Assembly (NCBI GenBank): GCA_000708835.1
Contig: DF237002.1
Location: 91,091-155,090 of the forward strand
Source: Klebsormidium nitens
Lineage: Eukaryota > Plantae > Klebsormidiophyceae
Length of the DNA: 64,000 nucleotides
Direction of reading: 5' to 3'
Shown here piece by piece: positions 24,317 to 32,836 of this stretch. Both the position numbers and the translations under genes were made by a program. The stretch's first letter is position 1; the number at the start of each line of letters is the position of its first letter. The notes under the pieces are model-generated. The model was given only the letters and a program-made list of their open reading frames with translations. It was not told the DNA's origin and ran no database searches.

Positions 24317-24614
24317 AGCGGCTGGACAAGAATTAGAATGCTGTGCTCAGCAGCCGAGCTAGGCAGACATGTCCTCGATTAGGCGCTAACCCGAACTGGG
24401 TGCTTACTGTGCTTACTGTAACTAGAACGAAAAGGGTGAACTTTATCGTTACCTCTTCGTCATCATCGTTCCCACCCTACCCGGCGTCATGGCGTACTAA
24501 CTCGTGACTGACTCATAGGTCAATCAATCAATCAATTTATTTTGTAGTCCCGTAGGAGCCATGGGTGGCTCATGAGACAAGGTCTGAATGTAGTCTCGAG
24601 TCCTAGGTTGTTCG

Positions 24615-24885
24615 CACTAGGGCAAATTTGTTGACGGCGTCGATTATTTTCCGTTAAAACTTCGGAAGGTCCGTCGACGGAGCATCGACGGCGTCGACGG
24701 AAAGATTGGTAGGTCCCAACTCCCCGTCGACGGAGCAGTGTCCGTTAACGGACTCCGTCGCTTGTGAAAGCCCGCGGTCCCGAGCAAATTTTTGACAGAC
24801 CGTCGACGGTCCGCCGACGGAAATATGACACTGCGAACAACCCAGTGTTTCCATCGAATTTTAGGAAGTCCGTCGACGGAGTAGT
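24615..24885. mobile_element. Possible non-autonomous CACTA-type DNA transposon remnant with palindromic CCGTCGACGG repeats
   Basis: CACTAGGG at 24615 and CCCAGTG at 24841-24847 (reverse complement CACTGGG). Perfect CCGTCGACGG occurs at 24671, 24724, 24800 and 24870, plus variants such as CCGTTAACGG at 24742. The 3-bp flanks do not match (TCG vs TTT). Confidence 0.45.
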
Positions 24886-25401
24886 CCGCACCTGCAGAGC
24901 CTGCAGATCCTCGTTGGTTGAAGGGCACATTGTCAATATCATATGAGGCGCCTTATCCAGGACTTGCGACAAGTTGCTGATTCAACTAGCTTGCTTCCAT
25001 CGAGGGGGCCCAACTCCGGATGAAGCCTTGTGAAGAAGATTGAGAATCTGACAGAGGAAGGAGGTGATTTGAATGAGAAGGATTCCCAGAACACCAAATT
25101 ATTTGACTATAGCAGAAGAGCTGAAGCAATCTGGTGGCAGCCTTTAGCTAGCAGCCTCTGACGAGAGTTTCAACTAGCAAGAAGAGTGGCTCAAATTGTG
25201 CCCAGTACAAGCACCTAGACGTCTTGGACTCGCTGGAGGTGCTGTGTGGATACGGCACAACAGTTTCCTGCTCCTCGTAAGACCGCATTGCAAGTCCTTC
25301 GGATCTAGTGCTCTGAGTTGATCGGCTAAAGTGGCTTTTTATACCCACTCCAAGCTTCAAAGCTCTACGTAGTGTAACCCCGTGGCAATCCCCTTCGCAT
25401 C

Positions 25402-28400
25402 ATGGTACGCCTAGGGAGCCCAGCCTTGCAAAGTCCACACCGCCAAGTCCTTCTTCTGCTGGGACTCCTTCTGTCAAGTTCCCTCCTCGTTTCGGGTCAG
25501 GTCGCCCTCCCCCCCCTCTCTCCAGCCCCAGCCCCTCAGGCTACCATCGCCACCAGTGTTCTTCCCAACGTTTCAGCTCTGAACGAATCCGCAAATGCGG
25601 CCATTCTAGCAACTCTCAACATTCTCCGGTCGGCGCCCCAACCGGCCCCCCCTGCGAGCAACCTACCCAACATTTCAGCCCTGAACGAATCAGCGAATGC
25701 GGCCATTCTAGCCACTCTCAACAGCATTCGCTCGGCGCCCCAGCCGGCCCCCCCTTCGAGCGACCTGCCGAACGCTTCTGCCTTGAATGCATCGGCGACT
25801 GCGGCCATTCTGGCCACTTTGACCGGAGTTCGCGGTGCGCCAGCGCCGGCGCCGTCGCAGACAAATGTCAGCAGTCTGACATTGCAGCAAATCTTGAACC
25901 AGCTGAACCAGAGGGTACCGGTGAGCTTCTTGTGGATCGTTCCCTGGTGCCGTTGAGAACTTGGAGGTTTCTGCAGGTTATGGAGTTCGGAGGCTCCCGA
26001 TGCAGCCCAGATCATCAGCATTTTGTCTTTTGGGAATTCAGATTTGCCCGATGTCGTTTGGGGGCTGGAGTTATTTCAAACCGTGTTCGCTGATGATATC
26101 TCGGGGGTTGGAGTCTACTAGAATTGTGTTCGTTGAGAGAATCTTCTGCTGACCCACTCAGGACTCCCCTTGGGCCCGTCACGAAACTTAGTTGAGGATT
26201 CTTGGGTGGGGCAGTGCACTAGACATTGTCTTGCACTTCATCACTCGGATCTACGAATTGGTTTTTTCCTTTGGCGCTTGAAATGAGAGATGGGCGCAGA
26301 TCGTATGTGCGCAGATCACTGGTCCCGCCAGCGAACTGTAAACTTTCTGCATCCATCATCTGTTCAAACGTACCCAATGCTGGAGAATGGTCTTAAAGAT
26401 AAGTCCATTTTGCGATTCCCACGAACCATCCCTTCCTCAATCTGGGCTTGCCCCATGCTTCAAGATCAGCACGTTCAAGAACGGTCACTCTTCGTCTCCT
26501 GCGCTCGCTCATGAGCTTTATTTTTGCGCAGCCACGTATACTCTCGCCTTAGTCACAGTCCCACAAGGACGAGTTTGCTGTTTTTCTTTCATGGTTCCAA
26601 ACTGGAAGTATAGGATGCAGACCCAGCGTAGATACTTCATTCCAAGAAAACAATATATAAAGTTCTAAACTTCAACTTGAACTTGACCATGAATCTGTTT
26701 TTTAAAGAAAGAATGAACCCTCCGTGACAAACCAAACATTCATAAGATTTTTCAGACCTTGTCATTCATCGGTATTTCTTCTTTGACTCAGCACGCTTGC
26801 AGACTAACCAAATTTTTCACCAGCCAATCAGCTGTCAGATTACCCAAACCCTCCCTCCGTGCAAATTACTCTGGGCCTGGGCGGGATTTGTGTGCCTTCG
26901 AATGAAGTTTCAAAATGGTGCCAAAAAAGCATCCTAAGATGTCAACCAGTATTTGACTTTCTAAGCTTAACACGCAAGCAAACTCATTTGTGCAGGCCGG
27001 TCTGGGCGTCGGCAGACTAGTGCGCCTTTGGATATAAGTTTCGAAGTTTTTCATGGTAACCTTTTAAACACCATTCCAACCACGATTTTACCACTACGCT
27101 TCATACTCGAGCAAACTCATTGTTTGGGCAGGCCACTCTGCGCCTTTGAAAAACTTTTATGAGGTTTTTGAAAAATTTAGCACCGTAAAATCTGTTCAAC
27201 CAGATTTTCACTCAGTAAGCTTTACACTGAAGCAAACTTATCACCTATGCAGGCCACCTTGGGTCTTGGCGCGCTCGGCGTGACCTACGGCGGCCAACAG
27301 GCGCAGCCGCTGCCCTTCTCTCAAGTGGTCACACTGCTGCTGCGCAACAACATCACCGCCATTCGCTTTCTGGACCCCCCCAACGCGGAGTATCTGGACG
27401 CGCTTTCAAACACAGGCATTCAGGTGCGGGCTTTTGCAATGTCTGCGTGCAGATGGGCATGCAGATGTGGCGCTGGAAACAGCCTCATCTTGGTTTGATG
27501 CATAATCTGTTGTGGTTGCTCGTAGTCCTGACTTTCTTTGCATGGAAAGGTCGGAGACTGAAGCGGACACTAGGTACCCGTGTGGCTTTGTGTCGGATGC
27601 TCAATGGTTAAAAAGCGCAAAGCTGCTTTCCCCGCTGTTTTCGGGACTGACACTCTGCAGTTAAGCAAGTGCCGACGATCAACAACAGTTCACGATGTTG
27701 AAGAATGATTTCTACTGGAGAGCAGGTGTCAATTATGGTGCCCAACAATTACATTGTGTACCTGAGCACCAATCCTGACGCGGCCAGGAGTTGGGTTAAC
27801 ACCTGGGTTGGGAAGTACATCGGGCGGGTTCAGTTCAAGTGAGTTTGGTTAACCCGTCGTCCAAAATCCTGGGTGCTTGGAAAGTCCCTGATCCAATCCC
27901 CTGGAGCTTTGAATAGGACAAGCTGTTACCGTCATGCATGTCAGCTTCAGCATCTATTTCTGAGACATTTTCTGAAGATGCAATTGTGTCAATCCTTCAC
28001 GTCCCTGCGTAAGCCTCCAGTCTCTGCTCCTAGAATAGCGGTTCCAAGGTTCACCTCTGTGGGCGTTCACATCCAGCAGTTATGATCGTTCAGATCAGGT
28101 GTGAATACTCCCTTGCGCAGGTACGTGGTGGTCGGTGACACCCCGCTCCGCTTGGTCTACAATTGCTACTACTGCGCCGCGCTGCCTCTGACCGTCGCCA
28201 GCATTCAGGCTGCAATCCTGGAACTGGGCCTTACGACGCAAGTGAGACTCTTCTTTCCTGGTCCCCCGACGTTTCCTGTATCTCAGATATTTTTCTTCAC
28301 TCGCTTGTACCTCCACTGATTCTGCTCTGCACCTCACTGCGCAAATGGCTCTTGAATCAAGCAAATAATACAGCTCTAACCCCCTAGCCAGGCTCAACAG

Positions 28401-31400
28401 TTAACGAGTCAGCTCCTAACCCCGATTTTGATTTTTGGTTTCAGGTCAGCGTCCCACTTGCGGCCAACGACGTTTTGGATTTTGCTGCCGGCGCATGGCC
28501 CCCCAACACGGCGGCATTCAATCCAGTCATTGGGCCCACGCTACTGCTAATACTGAAAACGGCGTTCGAGGCGAACGCCAATCTTTTGGTCGAGTTGGAT
28601 CCGTATGCGATCATTCAAGCGAACACGACCATTCCGTTAAACATGGCTTTGGGAACAGGTGGGTTGTCGGGTTGGTTATCGTTAACCCCTTTATGTTTGT
28701 TCCTCAATCCTGGATGTCGTTGCTGTGGTTCGCTTTGTTTGCCGTTTTCAACCTCTTCGCTGATGTGGCACGTGCTGTTATTCTTGGCGTCGTTGAGTTT
28801 CGCTTGTTCGTGTAGCAATTCTGGAACGTCAAACGCGTATTTGTCAGTTGTGGGAGTCCATGGCTCGATTGCAAGGCCCGTTCTGACAAGTGAATCCAGC
28901 ACTCTTTGTGCTAATTTGCAAGTTTCTTCAGTGTCTTCATAGTCAAAGTCGAAAGCGGTTTGTGTTGCTGCAGCGCAAATGGGCGATCCCGGCACGTTCC
29001 AGCTAATCACGGGGCAGAACTACACCAACATCTACGACATCTACCTGGACGCCATCGCTTATGCTGCTACCGCGGTAAGCTATCACGCTCAAGTCTTACG
29101 GATCGCTATACAAGCGGGCAGCTCTCGTCAGAGATGCGCAAAGACGGGGGCTACTGCCGCAGCTACGCCGCATTGAACTGAAGCGCTCGAGATGAGAGGC
29201 CGACGCAGCCGTCTGATATCCGGACTCATGACGTCAGCAGTGTTACACGGTGGCGTAAGCATCTTTGCGGATGGGACTGTTGACGACGTGTACACTCAAG
29301 ACGTGGAGAGTATGCACAAAGCCTTGTCAAGAACGGCTGGTGGGAAGGAGGTTGGTATGGTGGATATGCTGGATGCGGCAAAAGAGTATTCTGCGGACCA
29401 GCTGGCGAGTATGGATCTAGGGTTTTTGGGGCACGAGGTGGTGTACCGGCCTAAAGAGGACTATGCAAGGCGCCTCGGAGTGGACTCTAGACTTGCAAGG
29501 GAGTGGGAGGGGAGGATAGGACAGGACGAGAGAGGGACGGTAGATGATAGGGGAATTGGTTTGAAGAGCAAGAGAAAGCGGGAACGAAAAGGACAGAAGG
29601 ACAGGTTACGAGAATGCGAGAGGACAGACAAGACCGAAGGGGGGACAGAACAATGGCAATTAGTCATAAAAACACGTTTGTGGCAAAGATGGAGATCCGC
29701 ATGGGACAAAAACTTTCAACAAACATCAGCCGAAACTTTGTTTCCGCTTGTCCCTGCGGCTCCGCTTCCAGACTTGAACGTCACGGTCGGCTCCACGGGC
29801 TAACCCACGTTGAAAGAGGGAAAATCTAACCAACTATTGGACACCGACAAAGTTCCGTTTCCGCTGGTATCTGCAGTTCCGGTTCCCAACGCTGAACATC
29901 ACGGTCGCCTCCACGGGGTGGCCCACCGACGGCGGCGGAAACGCGACGCTGGCCAACGCGCAGACGTACGTGAACTACGTCATCCAGCGCGCGCTGTCCA
30001 ACGGCGGGACGCCCTACCGGCAGAGCCGGGTGAGGAACAGCCGGAAACGAGATGACCAAGCTGCTGAACAAAAAAAGTTCTTGACGTTGTGAGCGTTGAG
30101 AGTACGAAAGCGGTGGGGAATCCTGGTCTATGTTGAGTGCATGAATGGTTTCGGGTCAGTGCGTGAGGAGATGAGACTAGGCGTGGTCTTGAGATTTGTC
30201 CGATTGAGACTGGTGAGTAAGAAAGGACGGCGGCCTTTTCCCCCACAATGCGGCTTCAATTTCTATTCAAGGAAGGATTACGGAAAAGGGGTTTGCGACT
30301 TGCGATCGGCGGTCTCGGCGCATTGATGGGGAAGTGGAGGGCTTGATCGTCGATCCACTTCCTAAGAAGCCGACTGTTGCGACGTGGTATTGAAACGCCG
30401 TCAAAGGGTCGTGAAGCCCACTCACATGAGTGCGATCCAAGCTTCAATTCTGCCCCAAGGGATCGGATTGCCCTTCATTGCCCCTTCCTCACGATAAACC
30501 TGAACTGGACGAGCTCGATTCAAAATCATCTCGCACACATTTCTCCTCGACCATTGCATAGACTGGCCCTTCCTCCTCGAACGTTTCCAGGTGACGGAAT
30601 TATACTTGAACGAGATCATCGACCAGGACCTGATCGAGCTGACGGACGTGCCCTTCCCCAACGGCTGGCAGCGCCACCGGGGCCTATTCACACCACAGGG
30701 CGCGCCCAAGTTTGCGGCGAATCTGAGGGGGACGAATGCGCCGCCGCGGCCGATGAACGGGCTCCAGGATCTGATACGACTGCCTACCAGGTCGGTTCAT
30801 CTGTTCGGTTGGTCAGCCGGTTTGGTTAGTTGTCCACCCACATCTCGGATGATTCCCTTCACTTATTGTCACCCGTCTCCGCACCCCGTTTGTACGCATT
30901 GATCAGGTGAGCTGGACTGTAGTGTGGTCGCGCGAATCTATCTGCCAAGTCCGGGAAGAATTTTGGCAGAACGTCAAGAGTCCGTTTTCCAGCACGGCGT
31001 TCTAATTTAAGAATGGCGAGCTTCGTACACGTCCTCTGAGTGCACTCCAAATGAAAGGGCTGTCGCTCGTAGGCGAAGGGCTGCTTTTCGTCTGTGGGTT
31101 TCAATCGTGCAAGCCATGAGTGCGCCCGCTTTTTCCGAAGGCCACGGTTTGAAGGTGACTCACTGTCCAGCTGTGTCGCGAATAGATGGCCCACTATCGC
31201 CCATAAAGGTCACATGCAGACTGATTCCTAAGCCTGAGTACGCCAACAAAAATGACTGCACATTTGCGAGCTGCAAACCTCTGTCTATATCCACCAGCGG
31301 CCGGGGTCGTAGCCATTTCGCAGGAGTCTGATCCCGCCCTTTCTTCCCCCAGGTTCTGCGTCGCCAAGCCCGGTGTTCCCGACACCGCCCTCCTGCTTCA

Positions 31401-31743
31401 GCAGATTCAGGCCTGCTCCGGCGGCGCCGACTGCACGCCGTTCGCAAACGGGGGCTCGTGTTTCCTGCCCGACACGGTCGCAGCGCACACGTCGTACGCG
31501 TTTAATGATTACTACCAGAAGCACGCGCAGTGGAGCCCCGCTTGCGACTTTGGTGGGACCGCACAGCTAGTTACAGAAGACCCCTCGTACGGTAATTGCT
31601 CGTTCACTGGCGGGGTGGGTCTCCCGGGATACGGGGTTCCGGGAACGGTTAGGAGTGCGGGCGGCGAGGGGCGAGTCGGTTTTGCATTGAGGGTTGCGGT
31701 TACGTGCTTGCTTTCAGCGCTTTTAGGTCACGGGTTAGTGTAG
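25402..31743 (+). CDS. Secreted GH17 beta-1,3-glucanase homologue with X8/CBM43 domain and probable GPI signal; both catalytic Glu appear substituted
   Basis: Exons 25402-25920 (hydrophobic signal peptide plus repeats), 27253-27423 (LGVTYG), 27726-27838, 28121-28241 (YVVVGDTP), 28445-28658 (LLVELDPY), 28974-29074, 29877-30029 (ITVASTGWPTDG), 30591-30790 and 31353-31743 (FCVAKP..ACSGGADC..NGGSCFLPDTVAAHTSYAFNDYYQ..CDFGGTA..DPSYGNC, which is X8, then a hydrophobic C-terminus). Confidence 0.9.
25561..25845 (+). repeat. Three tandem 102-nt (34-aa) coding repeats in exon 1 of the GH17 gene
   Basis: Units start at 25561, 25663 and 25765: LPNVSALNESANAAILATLNILRSAPQPAPP, LPNISALNESANAAILATLNSIRSAPQPAPP and LPNASALNASATAAILATLTGVRGAPAPAP. 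Confidence 0.9.
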
Positions 31744-32836
31744 GCTATCGTCAGAAAGTCGTTTAGCTTAGCAGAGGAAGGTGCCCAGTGTTGTTGCCTT
31801 CGGGCTGTCCTTGAGATCACCAACATGCTGCCCGATCCTTCCGACTGGTTCTATTTCAGAAGATGTACCATATCGTTTGATAATTTGTTTTGTGCAATTT
31901 TCATGCGACCATCTTTGCCGGTCCGTCGTGATGTTAAGTCCAAAGATTTGGCAAACTCGCAAAATGAGCAGGAACATGGTTCCATACACGACTTCGCATG
32001 TGTATGGAGAGTGAAAAATTGCGCTGACAATTGTAAGAACACTGGGCTCTCCTACTTCGCACATGCAAACTATGATAGGACTTTGGCGCATACGGGGCGT
32101 GCAAAACCGTCTAGCTGGCCAATCAGCTAGCGGACTCATGAACGGAAGAAGTTCCTTTCTGGCTGAGCCATGCAAGAATCAATGTGCATACAAGCTCCTT
32201 TTGTGAAACATGCTAACTTATAGTGCCGTTCAACAGCTAAGTCGATCGGGCCTGATGCGCGATGCTGCATTGAATGTGTCGCTATCGACCGTACGGATCG
32301 ACCTCGATACTTTGTTACAGAGGTCCAACCTCTCGCGATATCGGGTCTGGGGACTGTAAGTTCCTTGCCTTCAAGCGAGCCCTGATAGCTTGACTGGCAC
32401 GCAGGGCGGACCCGGTTCCAAAAGTGCACACTACGGTGATATCCAAAAACGAATTGACGTCTATAGACCGCGAGTATTTTGCCCCAATTGACAACTGCAA
32501 GTAGCGAGCTGCCTCTCAGTAACTTCTACTCAGGAAGCTGTCTAGTACCCAGTACGTTATGGATCTCAGAATCGCTACATAGATACACGATTGCGCGCGA
32601 TTTTTCGGATCAGTGTGCCAGCGCCGCGATGTCCCGGCAAGCGTGTCACTGATTTGCGAGGCGGGCCTATGGCGTGTGTTGCTCAATCATGCCTACTTTG
32701 GATCTTGACGTCATTGGAGGAAAATCTGCTCTCCCGGACTCCACGTGCTTTGACACGGCGTGCGATGCAAATCGACCCGGCGGACCAAGCCCAATTTCAC
32801 TGCTGTGTGTACCTCAAATGATCACCAGACGGCGCT

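Follow-up and report, generated by a model that had tools for sequence, protein, structure and literature searches.

Gene structure and transcription

The window analyzed was a stretch of 64,000 nucleotides of Klebsormidium nitens DNA (contig DF237002.1, positions 91,091 to 155,090). A GH17-X8 gene of nine exons was found on its + strand, starting at position 25402 and encoding a 660-aa product identical to the public K. nitens protein GAQ80396.1, which is annotated only as 'O-Glycosyl hydrolases family 17 protein'. The initial annotation had placed the gene at 27253-31743 and had counted eight exons. The frame and the splice phases were indeed intact, but the spliced contigs revealed nine exons, the proposed span being that of exons 2-9 only. 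Similarly, a putative signal peptide was present as had been described, but it was located outside that span, in exon 1.

Exon 1 (25402-25920) contained the start codon and a putative signal peptide, followed by a Pro/Asn-rich N-terminal extension, and was defined by the ORF, by the spliced contigs of four runs and by the identity to GAQ80396.1. The start of the GH17 barrel (beta1-beta2, with LGVTYG) was encoded by exon 2 (27253-27423), as judged by Pfam and spliced contigs, and beta3/alpha3 by exon 3 (27726-27838; spliced contigs). Exon 4 (28121-28241) carried beta4 with a degenerate acid/base motif, which was recognized by alignments to PDB sequences in addition to spliced contigs. Spliced contigs and alignments also defined exon 5 (28445-28658; beta5-beta6, with E358 and D360), exon 6 (28974-29074; GH17, with Q389) and exon 8 (30591-30790; beta8 and the C-terminal part of the barrel, with Q476 and Q491). 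Beta7 and a degenerate nucleophile motif were found in exon 7 (29877-30029; GC3 of 0.96; spliced contigs). The X8/CBM43 module, a Gly-rich linker, a candidate omega region S632-A633-G634, the hydrophobic tail F641-V660 and the stop codon were all contained in exon 9 (31353-31743). All these exons lay on the + strand.

All eight introns were bounded by GT..AG, and the ORF was open across the nine exons (660 codons). Every one of the eight junctions was present in spliced RNA contigs from four runs of four studies, at a word depth of 54-238 versus ~3-22 for the intron-bearing contigs, and both the exon1-exon2 junction (25920/27253) and the last junction were spliced in each of the 4 runs. The confirmation of the exons by RNA-seq that had been suggested initially was thereby obtained, and the gene was found to be transcribed and correctly spliced, as would be expected of a maintained pseudoenzyme. 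The RNA contigs did not differ from the genome by a single base and contained the modelled junctions only, which ruled out a restoration of the Glu residues discussed below by RNA editing or alternative splicing. A giant-virus origin of the gene was also ruled out by its eight spliceosomal introns, its plant-type architecture and a viral contig scan that gave no match. A 203-aa ORF within intron 6 matched no family in a Pfam search. Local tandem duplication of an acceptor boundary was observed twice at the locus.

Domain organization of the predicted protein

Residues 1-32 (25402-25497, + strand) formed a candidate signal peptide, judged by eye and by hydropathy, with a charged n-region, a Leu-rich h-region (Kyte-Doolittle value of 2.1 for residues 15-31) and V-S-G before Q33. 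The N-terminal repeat extension was 140 residues long and included three tandem 102-nt (34-aa) repeats of the form LPNxSALNxSAxAAILATL...APxPAPP (25561-25866, + strand; TRF: period 102, 2.5-2.8 copies). The protein contained 13 N-glycosylation sequons, six of which were inside these exon-1 repeats. For the repeat region, no family was found in Pfam and no usable neighbour in the Atlas.

The homology to GH17 extended over the whole domain. The Pfam profile PF00332 matched residues 181-506 with an E-value of 1.1e-34 and a score of 120.9 bits (cut-off 28.2), covering profile positions 1-303 of 306. When Pfam and PDB were searched exon by exon, matches were obtained for exons 2 (weak), 7 and 9 only; the acid/base exon alone returned nothing, and the laccase matches of exon 5 alone were taken as chance. 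The barrel was modeled by AlphaFold2 with a pLDDT of 85.4 and a pTM of 0.87. The top Foldseek matches of the model were the plant GH17 enzymes 6jms, 3ur8, 2cyg and 1ghs (TM 0.91-0.93, rmsd 2.0-2.5 Å), so that the predicted (beta/alpha)8 barrel was superposable on solved GH17 structures. The model strand 91-97 stopped just before D274/T275 and S425 was within the model strand 246-251, which positioned T275 and S425 at the predicted ends of beta4 and beta7, respectively. The G-W-P turn after beta7 was retained.

The X8/CBM43 core (31354-31596, + strand) was recognized by Pfam (2.5e-15, 57.3 bits versus a cut-off of 25.7) and contained six Cys residues (C533, C552, C558, C567, C595 and C613) and the HxSYAFNxYYQ motif. 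Its alignment with Ole e 10 (PDB 2jon) was gapless, with an E-value of 1.9e-21, ~48% identity and all six Cys aligned, so both the profile and the cysteines assigned the module to X8/CBM43. The C-terminal tail F641-V660, the last 20 residues, averaged 1.8 on the Kyte-Doolittle scale, but it included Arg and His. Hence, the Cys-rich X8 domain and the hydrophobic C-terminus were as intact as the initial annotation had held. Together with S632-A633-G634 and the spacer G635-G640, the tail formed a candidate GPI signal, and a GPI anchor was suggested by this arrangement, as read by eye and from hydropathy. The protein did not have the PDCB-type architecture of a signal peptide, X8 and a GPI signal without a catalytic-type domain, as a full GH17 barrel preceded its X8 module.

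Replacement of the catalytic and cleft residues

In plants, callose is degraded mainly by GH17 glucanases. The two catalytic Glu residues of the family have been reported to be highly conserved among charophytes, fungi and embryophytes, a range that reaches from fungi to angiosperms (PMC4033164). An enzyme of this family is expected to have its acid/base Glu in an N-E motif at the end of beta4, its nucleophile Glu in E-[ST]-G-W-P at the end of beta7, and auxiliary Glu together with cleft Asn and Tyr residues. None of these was found in the K. nitens protein.

The sequence V272-G273-D274-T275-P276 was encoded at 28131-28145, and in the alignments to 6jms, 4hpg and 2cyg its VGDT was located under the VGNE of the solved GH17 enzymes. 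Thus, D274 (GAC) and T275 (ACC; together 28137-28142, + strand) occupied the positions of the canonical Asn and of the acid/base Glu, respectively, as had been anticipated from the degenerate motif. The nucleophile region read V-A-S-T-G-W-P (~29904-29924). It was degenerate where the initial annotation had placed it, but the residue that replaced Glu was Ser425 (TCC; 29910-29912, + strand) rather than Thr, since Thr426 corresponded to the neighbouring position, where Ser or Thr is usual. This assignment was based on alignments to 6jms, 2cyg and 4gzi, the last being a potato GH17 E-to-A active-site mutant that was used as the nucleophile alignment reference.

Two further Glu residues, which are 86-100% conserved across the family and are found after beta8 in the contexts F-N-E and E-[KR]-x-[FW]-G-L-F, were both replaced, by Q476 (30624-30626) and Q491 (30669-30671). 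Within the cleft, E358 (28592-28594) took the place of Asn and D360 (28598-28600) that of Tyr in the N-x-Y-P-Y motif, Q389 stood for an invariant Asp, and further cleft residues at Tyr/Phe positions were changed as well (A363, I365 and G378). The acidic side chains newly present near the old centre were D274, E358, D360, E472 and D475.

The residues were mapped by three independent alignments, namely to PDB sequences, in a 60-sequence MAFFT alignment and by hmmalign of 142 proteins, and all three showed that both catalytic Glu were missing, in agreement with the initial annotation; its proposal to map them on GH17 HMMs and structures led to T275 and S425. Glu occupied the acid/base column in 54/59 sequences by MAFFT and in 127/142 of the fetched GH17 proteins by hmmalign, and the nucleophile column in 138/142. 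The K. nitens protein was the only one of the 142 in which all four Glu were absent. Given these column counts and the uniqueness of the fourfold loss, the substitution pattern was not considered an effect of chance or alignment. The codons were distant from GAR, by two to three changes for ACC (T275) and by three for TCC (S425), therefore the losses of Glu appear to be old. In total, 25 of the 64 highly conserved GH17 columns were changed; these were not significantly focused on the catalytic face (10/21 there versus 15/43 elsewhere, p = 0.42).

Based on the model and the alignments, it was concluded that the predicted barrel keeps its fold without the canonical catalytic machinery. A literature search found neither a described GH17 pseudoenzyme nor a mention of the accession numbers.

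Relatives, divergence and selection

The nearest relatives of the protein were ordinary land-plant GH17-X8 proteins of ~31% identity (range 27-33%). A word search with residues 175-640 found land-plant GH17-X8 proteins only, at 28-32% identity, and a search with residues 176-525 returned only the K. nitens protein itself; 8000 candidates were scored in each, with a length filter of 0.55-1.75x that leaves out fragments and short transcripts. When representative sequences were searched with the X8 exon, mostly X8-only or multi-X8 proteins were obtained, and the best full-length GH17-X8 match was 32.6% identical. Viral and metagenome contig scans gave no match. Hence, no close orthologue or paralogue was found in the word, representative, viral or metagenome searches. 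The protein cluster showed no Logan source, yet Logan RNA contigs carried the whole CDS, so the lack of an entry from that collection is weak evidence of absence.

By sequence comparison, divergence was much greater in the GH17 domain than in the X8 module. The identity ratio of GH17 to X8 was 0.62 versus a median of 0.99, the second lowest of 138, and the terminal branch of the GH17 domain (1.55) was the third longest of 140. It had been suggested initially that the gene could inform the origin of PDCB-like proteins. This idea was not sustained, as the gene is a long-branch one from a single species with ordinary land-plant GH17-X8 proteins as its nearest relatives, and no phylogenetic link to PDCB was found.

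A decayed tandem copy of the intron-6/exon-7 boundary was located inside intron 6 (29740-29808, + strand). Where the acceptor would be CTGCAG, this copy read CTGCGG; its frame was interrupted by a TAA, and its TCC-ACG (Ser-Thr) codons were the same as in exon 7. Compared with 29857-29926, the fossil copy showed 55 matches, 14 mismatches and 1 gap, being ~20% diverged over 70 nt. Since the Ser codon was already present in the fossil copy, the Ser425 codon predates ~20% of neutral divergence. In simulations of neutral drift at 0.08-0.15 per site, only 1.2% to 0.025% of the trials ended with an open ORF, and at the low end of the drift range, 0.045 per site, the ORF survived in 7.6% of neutral trials. 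The dN/dS between the repeats, which concerns 34 codons per copy and exon 1 only, was 0.13-0.37. GC3 was 0.725 versus an intron GC of 0.494. The fossil copy, the repeat dN/dS and the GC3 all pointed, indirectly, to coding constraint.

These data were weighed against the explanation that the locus is a transcribed relic, that is, a duplicated GH17-X8 gene which has lost its function and is drifting, its frame being open by chance or by a recent loss of constraint. Such a relic would agree with the very long GH17 branch, with the 25 changed columns and their lack of a significant catalytic-face focus, and with the failure of the searches to find a relative above ~32% identity, and the two tandem acceptor-boundary duplications suggest a structurally unstable locus; it is at odds, however, with an ORF that is intact over 660 codons, with eight canonical splice sites that are intact as well, and with a spliced transcript that was plentiful in four studies. 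A recent loss fits poorly with catalytic codons at least two to three changes away from Glu, which point to an old loss, and with a Ser codon predating a neutral divergence that an unconstrained ORF rarely survives. The low dN/dS of the repeats, the confidently predicted barrel, the six intact Cys of X8 and a GC3 well above the intron GC also speak against a relic, which we regard as unlikely. The gene is probably maintained, with indirect indications of selection. The opinion of the initial annotation that this was not a dead gene was upheld by the spliced transcript in four studies, the intact ORF and the confidently predicted barrel.

Proposed function and alternative explanations

We propose, with a probability of roughly 0.6, that the gene encodes an expressed and maintained pseudoenzyme that is tethered to the cell surface, binds callose-type glucan by X8 without cutting it, and uses the barrel as a scaffold or binding surface. 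The GH17 pseudoenzyme itself appears to be real, and it is probably maintained. The product would be secreted to the surface of K. nitens cells, heavily glycosylated and probably held there by a GPI anchor. Its (beta/alpha)8 barrel would be folded but unable to run the retaining two-carboxylate mechanism, because Thr275 has taken the place of the acid/base Glu and Ser425 that of the nucleophile Glu; the replaced residues thus suggest a loss of hydrolysis. The X8/CBM43 module is a likely beta-1,3-glucan binder by its homology to Ole e 10 and the PDCB-type modules, and callose binding is suggested by the same domain homology. Any glucan binding would probably be by X8 alone, because aromatic and polar residues of the barrel cleft have been replaced as well. 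The biological role would then be at the interface of the plasma membrane and the wall, where the protein may hold callose-type glucan uncleaved through X8, and the remodelled barrel may act as a scaffold or offer a surface to which a ligand binds. Callose is abundant and stress-inducible in the walls of Klebsormidium, where it is laid down within minutes of desiccation, and the alga has no plasmodesmata (PMC4650865).

The protein might instead still be an enzyme, possibly of another specificity or mechanism, in which D274 (by the old acid/base) and E358 and D360 (both on beta6, by the old nucleophile) act as a new catalytic pair or substrate site. This was judged improbable. Three of the changes do bring in an acid (N to D274, N to E358 and Y to D360), and neither the fold nor the G-W-P turn that follows beta7 has been lost, but four family-invariant Glu were lost together, along with an invariant Asp (now Q389) and the cleft residues at D360, A363, I365 and G378, in a pattern seen in no other of the 142 homologues. 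A literature search found no GH17 precedent, and Asp at the Asn and Tyr positions would be expected to sit further from the anomeric carbon. A broader version, equally doubtful, is that the same three residues form a rebuilt catalytic or ligand-binding site with new chemistry or a non-glucan ligand, X8 still targeting callose; the GH17 fold would then have been rebuilt in a streptophyte alga of an early-diverging lineage.

The slightest chance was given to a decoy or signalling partner, as this is pure analogy. In that case a protein, for example a microbial glucanase inhibitor or a receptor, would be the ligand of the dead barrel, in a manner suggested for inactive hydrolase paralogues and for the GPI-anchored GH17 protein ZERZAUST, and X8 would serve only for wall targeting. 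In its favour, the architecture is that of a surface protein, a fast-evolving barrel is joined to a conserved targeting module, and tissue morphogenesis through the STRUBBELIG receptor-kinase pathway requires ZERZAUST (PMC6643898).

Comparison with known systems

The proposed pseudoenzyme shares with the plant GH17-X8 enzymes the order of a signal peptide (putative in K. nitens), GH17 barrel, X8/CBM43 and hydrophobic C-terminus, the full-length Pfam GH17 match and a superposable predicted fold. It differs from them by its 140-residue N-terminal repeat extension without relatives and by an identity of only 27-33%. Both catalytic Glu are reported as conserved in those enzymes (PMC4033164), whereas the K. 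nitens protein lacks these, two more Glu, and the cleft Asn and Tyr. With Ole e 10 (2jon) it has in common a gapless X8 match, the six Cys and the aromatic motif HxSYAFNxYYQ; a surface location and no hydrolysis are predicted for it. Neither PDCB nor Ole e 10 has a GH17 barrel, while the K. nitens protein has a full, folded one by prediction.

ZERZAUST is reportedly not a regulator of callose, a finding said to come from Vaddepalli et al. in 2017. This protein (At1g64760) is an atypical GPI-anchored GH17 of Arabidopsis with a morphogenetic, signalling-linked role (PMC6643898). The K. nitens protein resembles it in being a putative GPI-type GH17 with a presumed role other than classical callose degradation; however, the ZERZAUST clade is conserved in land plants and includes a close paralogue, whereas its K. 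nitens counterpart is an orphan that lacks four Glu.

If the proposal is true, the protein would illustrate cleanly how a hydrolase can become a cell-surface binder in nature, and enzymes of the K. nitens genome would be miscounted wherever the public annotation 'O-Glycosyl hydrolases family 17 protein' is taken at face value. Should binding be confirmed, it would mean that non-hydrolytic callose-binding surface proteins can come from full-length glucanases, independently of the PDCB type, and a tool-like, non-cutting beta-1,3-glucan binder would be at hand.

TIM-barrel glycosidase folds without catalytic carboxylates have been reused for binding in the GH18 chitinase-like lectins and in beta-Klotho (GH1-like). 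Those proteins, which have known ligands, come from other families and other organisms, and the likeness is one by analogy. Beta-Klotho itself appeared at rank 37 among the distant Foldseek fold neighbours of the barrel.

Gene structure and transcripts

The stretch 24600-32300 was read and its in-frame pieces were joined, which gave a gene of nine exons on the + strand with GT..AG at every intron. Exon 1 (25402-25920) contained the start codon, a candidate signal peptide and a repeat-rich extension. It was followed by exons 2 (27253-27423), 3 (27726-27838), 4 (28121-28241), 5 (28445-28658), 6 (28974-29074), 7 (29877-30029), 8 (30591-30790) and 9 (31353-31743). The span 27253-31743 proposed in the initial annotation thus covered exons 2-9, while the start codon and candidate signal peptide were sited in exon 1. 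The predicted 660-aa product was identical letter-for-letter to GAQ80396.1 / A0A1Y1HV29 (K. nitens, contig DF237002.1), which is publicly annotated as an 'O-Glycosyl hydrolases family 17 protein'. The neighbouring genes, encoding a diphthamide synthase, two proteins without a Pfam family and a DUF3054 protein, did not suggest a functional cluster.

Contigs from four public runs of four studies were placed on 25790-31780 (5,991 letters); the label of the runs as RNA was a guess, and their behaviour was RNA-like. All eight modelled junctions, for which the initial annotation had proposed a check by RNA, were found spliced, each as a GT..AG skip, at a word depth of 54-238 (not an expression level or condition), and contigs retaining introns had a word depth of ~3-22. 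The entire coding region was covered by a single 2,613-nt contig, and no base differences, insertions or deletions relative to the genome were reported for the contigs over 25790-31780. From the junctions and the identical bases it was concluded that the gene is transcribed, that its splicing follows the model and that the RNA keeps the genomic Thr, Ser and Gln codons.

Catalytic positions

GH17 was assigned by Pfam to residues 181-506, covering profile positions 1-303 of 306 (1.1e-34), and X8 to residues 532-601 (2.5e-15). The catalytic positions were mapped by phmmer against solved GH17 sequences, by a 60-sequence MAFFT alignment and by hmmalign of 142 GH17 proteins, three independent approaches that were concordant. 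The acid/base Glu of V-G-N-E, present in 127 of the 142 proteins, was replaced by T275 within V-G-D274-T275 in all three, and its loss was therefore annotated correctly at the outset. The loss of the nucleophile Glu of E-[ST]-G-W-P (138 of 142) was confirmed as well; however, the residue in its place was Ser425 of S425-T426-G-W-P and not the Thr named initially. The Ala of the potato E-to-A active-site mutant 4gzi aligned with the same serine. Further replacements were Q476 for the Glu of F-N-E (138/142), Q491 for the Glu of E-K-H-F-G-L-F (130/142), E358 and D360 for the Asn and Tyr of N-x-Y-P-Y (138 and 135 of 142, respectively) and Q389 for an invariant Asp (138/142).

GAQ80396.1 was alone among the 142 GH17 proteins in having lost all four Glu residues, and 11 others were changed at the acid/base position only, to Asp or Gln. 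The ACC codon of T275 was at least 2-3 base changes, and the TCC codon of S425 three, away from GAA/GAG, so the catalytic losses were not recent single hits.

A Cys-x-x-Cys pair, C283/C286 (N-C-Y-Y-C, 28161-28172), was observed in the loop that follows beta4, which is enlarged and modelled with lower confidence. Canonical GH17 sequences do not have this pair, which could form a disulfide or a metal site adjoining the old acid/base position.

Probable maintenance of the gene

The reading frame and all splice sites were intact despite a GH17 terminal branch of 1.55 substitutions per site, the third longest of 140. The barrel had diverged far beyond X8. With a mean identity ratio of 0.62 (median 0.99), it ranked second lowest of 138, a value somewhat biased because part of the comparison set was picked by X8 similarity. 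The three exon-1 repeats, each 102 nt long, differed mostly synonymously, with dN/dS of 0.17, 0.13 and 0.37 at dS of 0.4-2.1. The GC3 of the coding sequence was 0.725 versus an intron GC of 0.494, and it reached 0.96 in exon 7, where the degenerate nucleophile motif lies.

The start of exon 7 (first 50 nt) and the preceding intron-6 acceptor had a decayed tandem duplicate 118 bp upstream (29740-29808). This intronic copy was 20% diverged, its acceptor was mutated or lost, and it had an in-frame TAA stop. It contained TCC-ACG, hence the Ser codon was older than the duplication. When neutral substitution of the coding sequence was simulated, the proportion of trials with an open frame was 1.2% to 0.025% at 0.08-0.15 per site and 7.6% at 0.045 per site.

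The combined evidence, namely the open frame and intact splice sites on a long branch, the divergence of the barrel relative to X8, the repeat dN/dS, the GC3 and the intronic copy with its simulation, favoured a maintained gene, as had been proposed initially, rather than a pseudogene. Each of these lines draws on little data, and it was considered rather unlikely, though the best placed of the alternatives, that the gene is a transcribed relic.

Close relatives were sought in a length-filtered word index of 5.8 billion clusters, from which Logan proteins of the relevant runs were apparently absent. Among the candidates scored, only land-plant GH17-X8 proteins of 28-32% identity were obtained, the nearest being a grass protein, and a barrel-only query returned GAQ80396.1 itself only. 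Viral and metagenome scans were empty. These blanks were a weak sign that relatives do not exist.

Fold and proposed function

An AlphaFold2 model of residues 176-525, built with 59 homologues, had a mean pLDDT of 85.4, a pTM of 0.87 and eight barrel strands, with T275 directly after model strand 91-97 (beta4) and S425 within strand 246-251 (beta7). The best nine PDB matches by Foldseek were plant GH17 glucanases only (TM by target 0.91-0.93, rmsd 2.0-2.5 Å, 24-30% identity), and a wide gap separated them from other clan GH-A barrels. The protein retained 39 of the 64 GH17-domain columns with at least 85% conservation. On the catalytic face the retained conserved residues were Gly, Pro, Val, Trp, Phe and one Asp, and the remaining conserved polar side chains were all changed; the replaced columns were not significantly enriched on that face in a crude test (p = 0.42). 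The Cys-rich X8 domain noted in the initial annotation was borne out by a gapless alignment with the CBM43 of Ole e 10 (2jon; E 1.9e-21), in which the six cysteines and the aromatic motif were kept.

The N-terminus was of the secretory type by sequence, and 13 N-glycosylation sequons and Pro-rich linkers were present. The C-terminus consisted of a Gly-rich linker with the small residues S632-A633-G634 and a 20-residue hydrophobic tail. The protein would be secreted and GPI-anchored. It would be incapable of retaining hydrolysis, because both the nucleophile and the acid/base of the established clan GH-A mechanism (cited in PMC4033164) are absent. An active site rewired around the new carboxylates D274, E358 and D360 was judged improbable. 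We proposed that beta-1,3-glucan would be bound via X8. Canonical glucan binding by the barrel itself is unlikely, as its cleft aromatic and polar residues have been lost as well, and the barrel may serve as a scaffold or bind another ligand. Klebsormidium walls are callose-rich and callose increases within 30 minutes of desiccation (PMC4650865); callose is a plausible ligand and context for the protein. The protein might instead act in signalling or as a decoy that binds proteins, as the analogy to ZERZAUST (PMC6643898) suggests; this was regarded as the least probable of the alternatives.

Comparison with known systems

GAQ80396.1 belongs to the GH17-X8 family by descent but fails its defining catalytic features, so that its classification as a glucan endo-1,3-beta-glucosidase is not warranted. 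It differs from PDCB-type proteins by its retained barrel and so is not one of them; nothing connected it to the origin of PDCBs, for which it had initially been thought of interest. Pseudoenzymes with glycosidase folds are a known kind, e.g., GH18 chi-lectins and beta-Klotho. The literature search gave no account of a natural GH17 protein with both catalytic Glu lost and no mention of the accession. The observation of a predicted GH17 pseudoenzyme is real and testable, and is known from a single species.

About 8% of the retrieved GH17-X8 homologues had Asp or Gln at the acid/base Glu with the nucleophile kept. These land-plant proteins (P0144, P0175, P0187, P0197, P0198, P0212, P0219, P0232, P0238 and P0243) came from Sphagnum, Selaginella, Riccia, Trapa, Cannabis, Prunus and Helianthus, and 'atypical' GH17 proteins with one such change may be widespread among land plants. 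Two further proteins, P0067 (886 aa) and P0109 (1455 aa), had two or three GH17 domains in tandem. A second case of a degenerate barrel may be one domain of P0067, in which F-G replaces N-E and the nucleophile is replaced by Q.

Repeats and other elements at the locus

The palindromic decamer CCGTCGACGG occurred in four copies within 210 bp (24671-24879), interspersed with several near-copies; these four were the only exact copies in the 64-kb window (0.03 expected). If the 2,613-nt RNA contig is colinear, the transcript starts at ~24922 and the cluster precedes it by ~40-250 bp. The cluster could represent a group of promoter elements or a small repeat.

The 3' end of intron 1 (26820-27252) contained three to four tandem units of ~118-133 bp, each ending with a degenerate intron-1 acceptor and the first exon-2 bases (GCAAACT...GCAGGCC...); splicing uses the last unit only. 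The acceptor-boundary duplications of introns 1 and 6 were similar in unit length (~118-133 bp). The 802-nt intron 6, which was retained in low-depth contigs, also contained an ORF of 203 aa (29192-29803, +) with many charged residues and no Pfam match.
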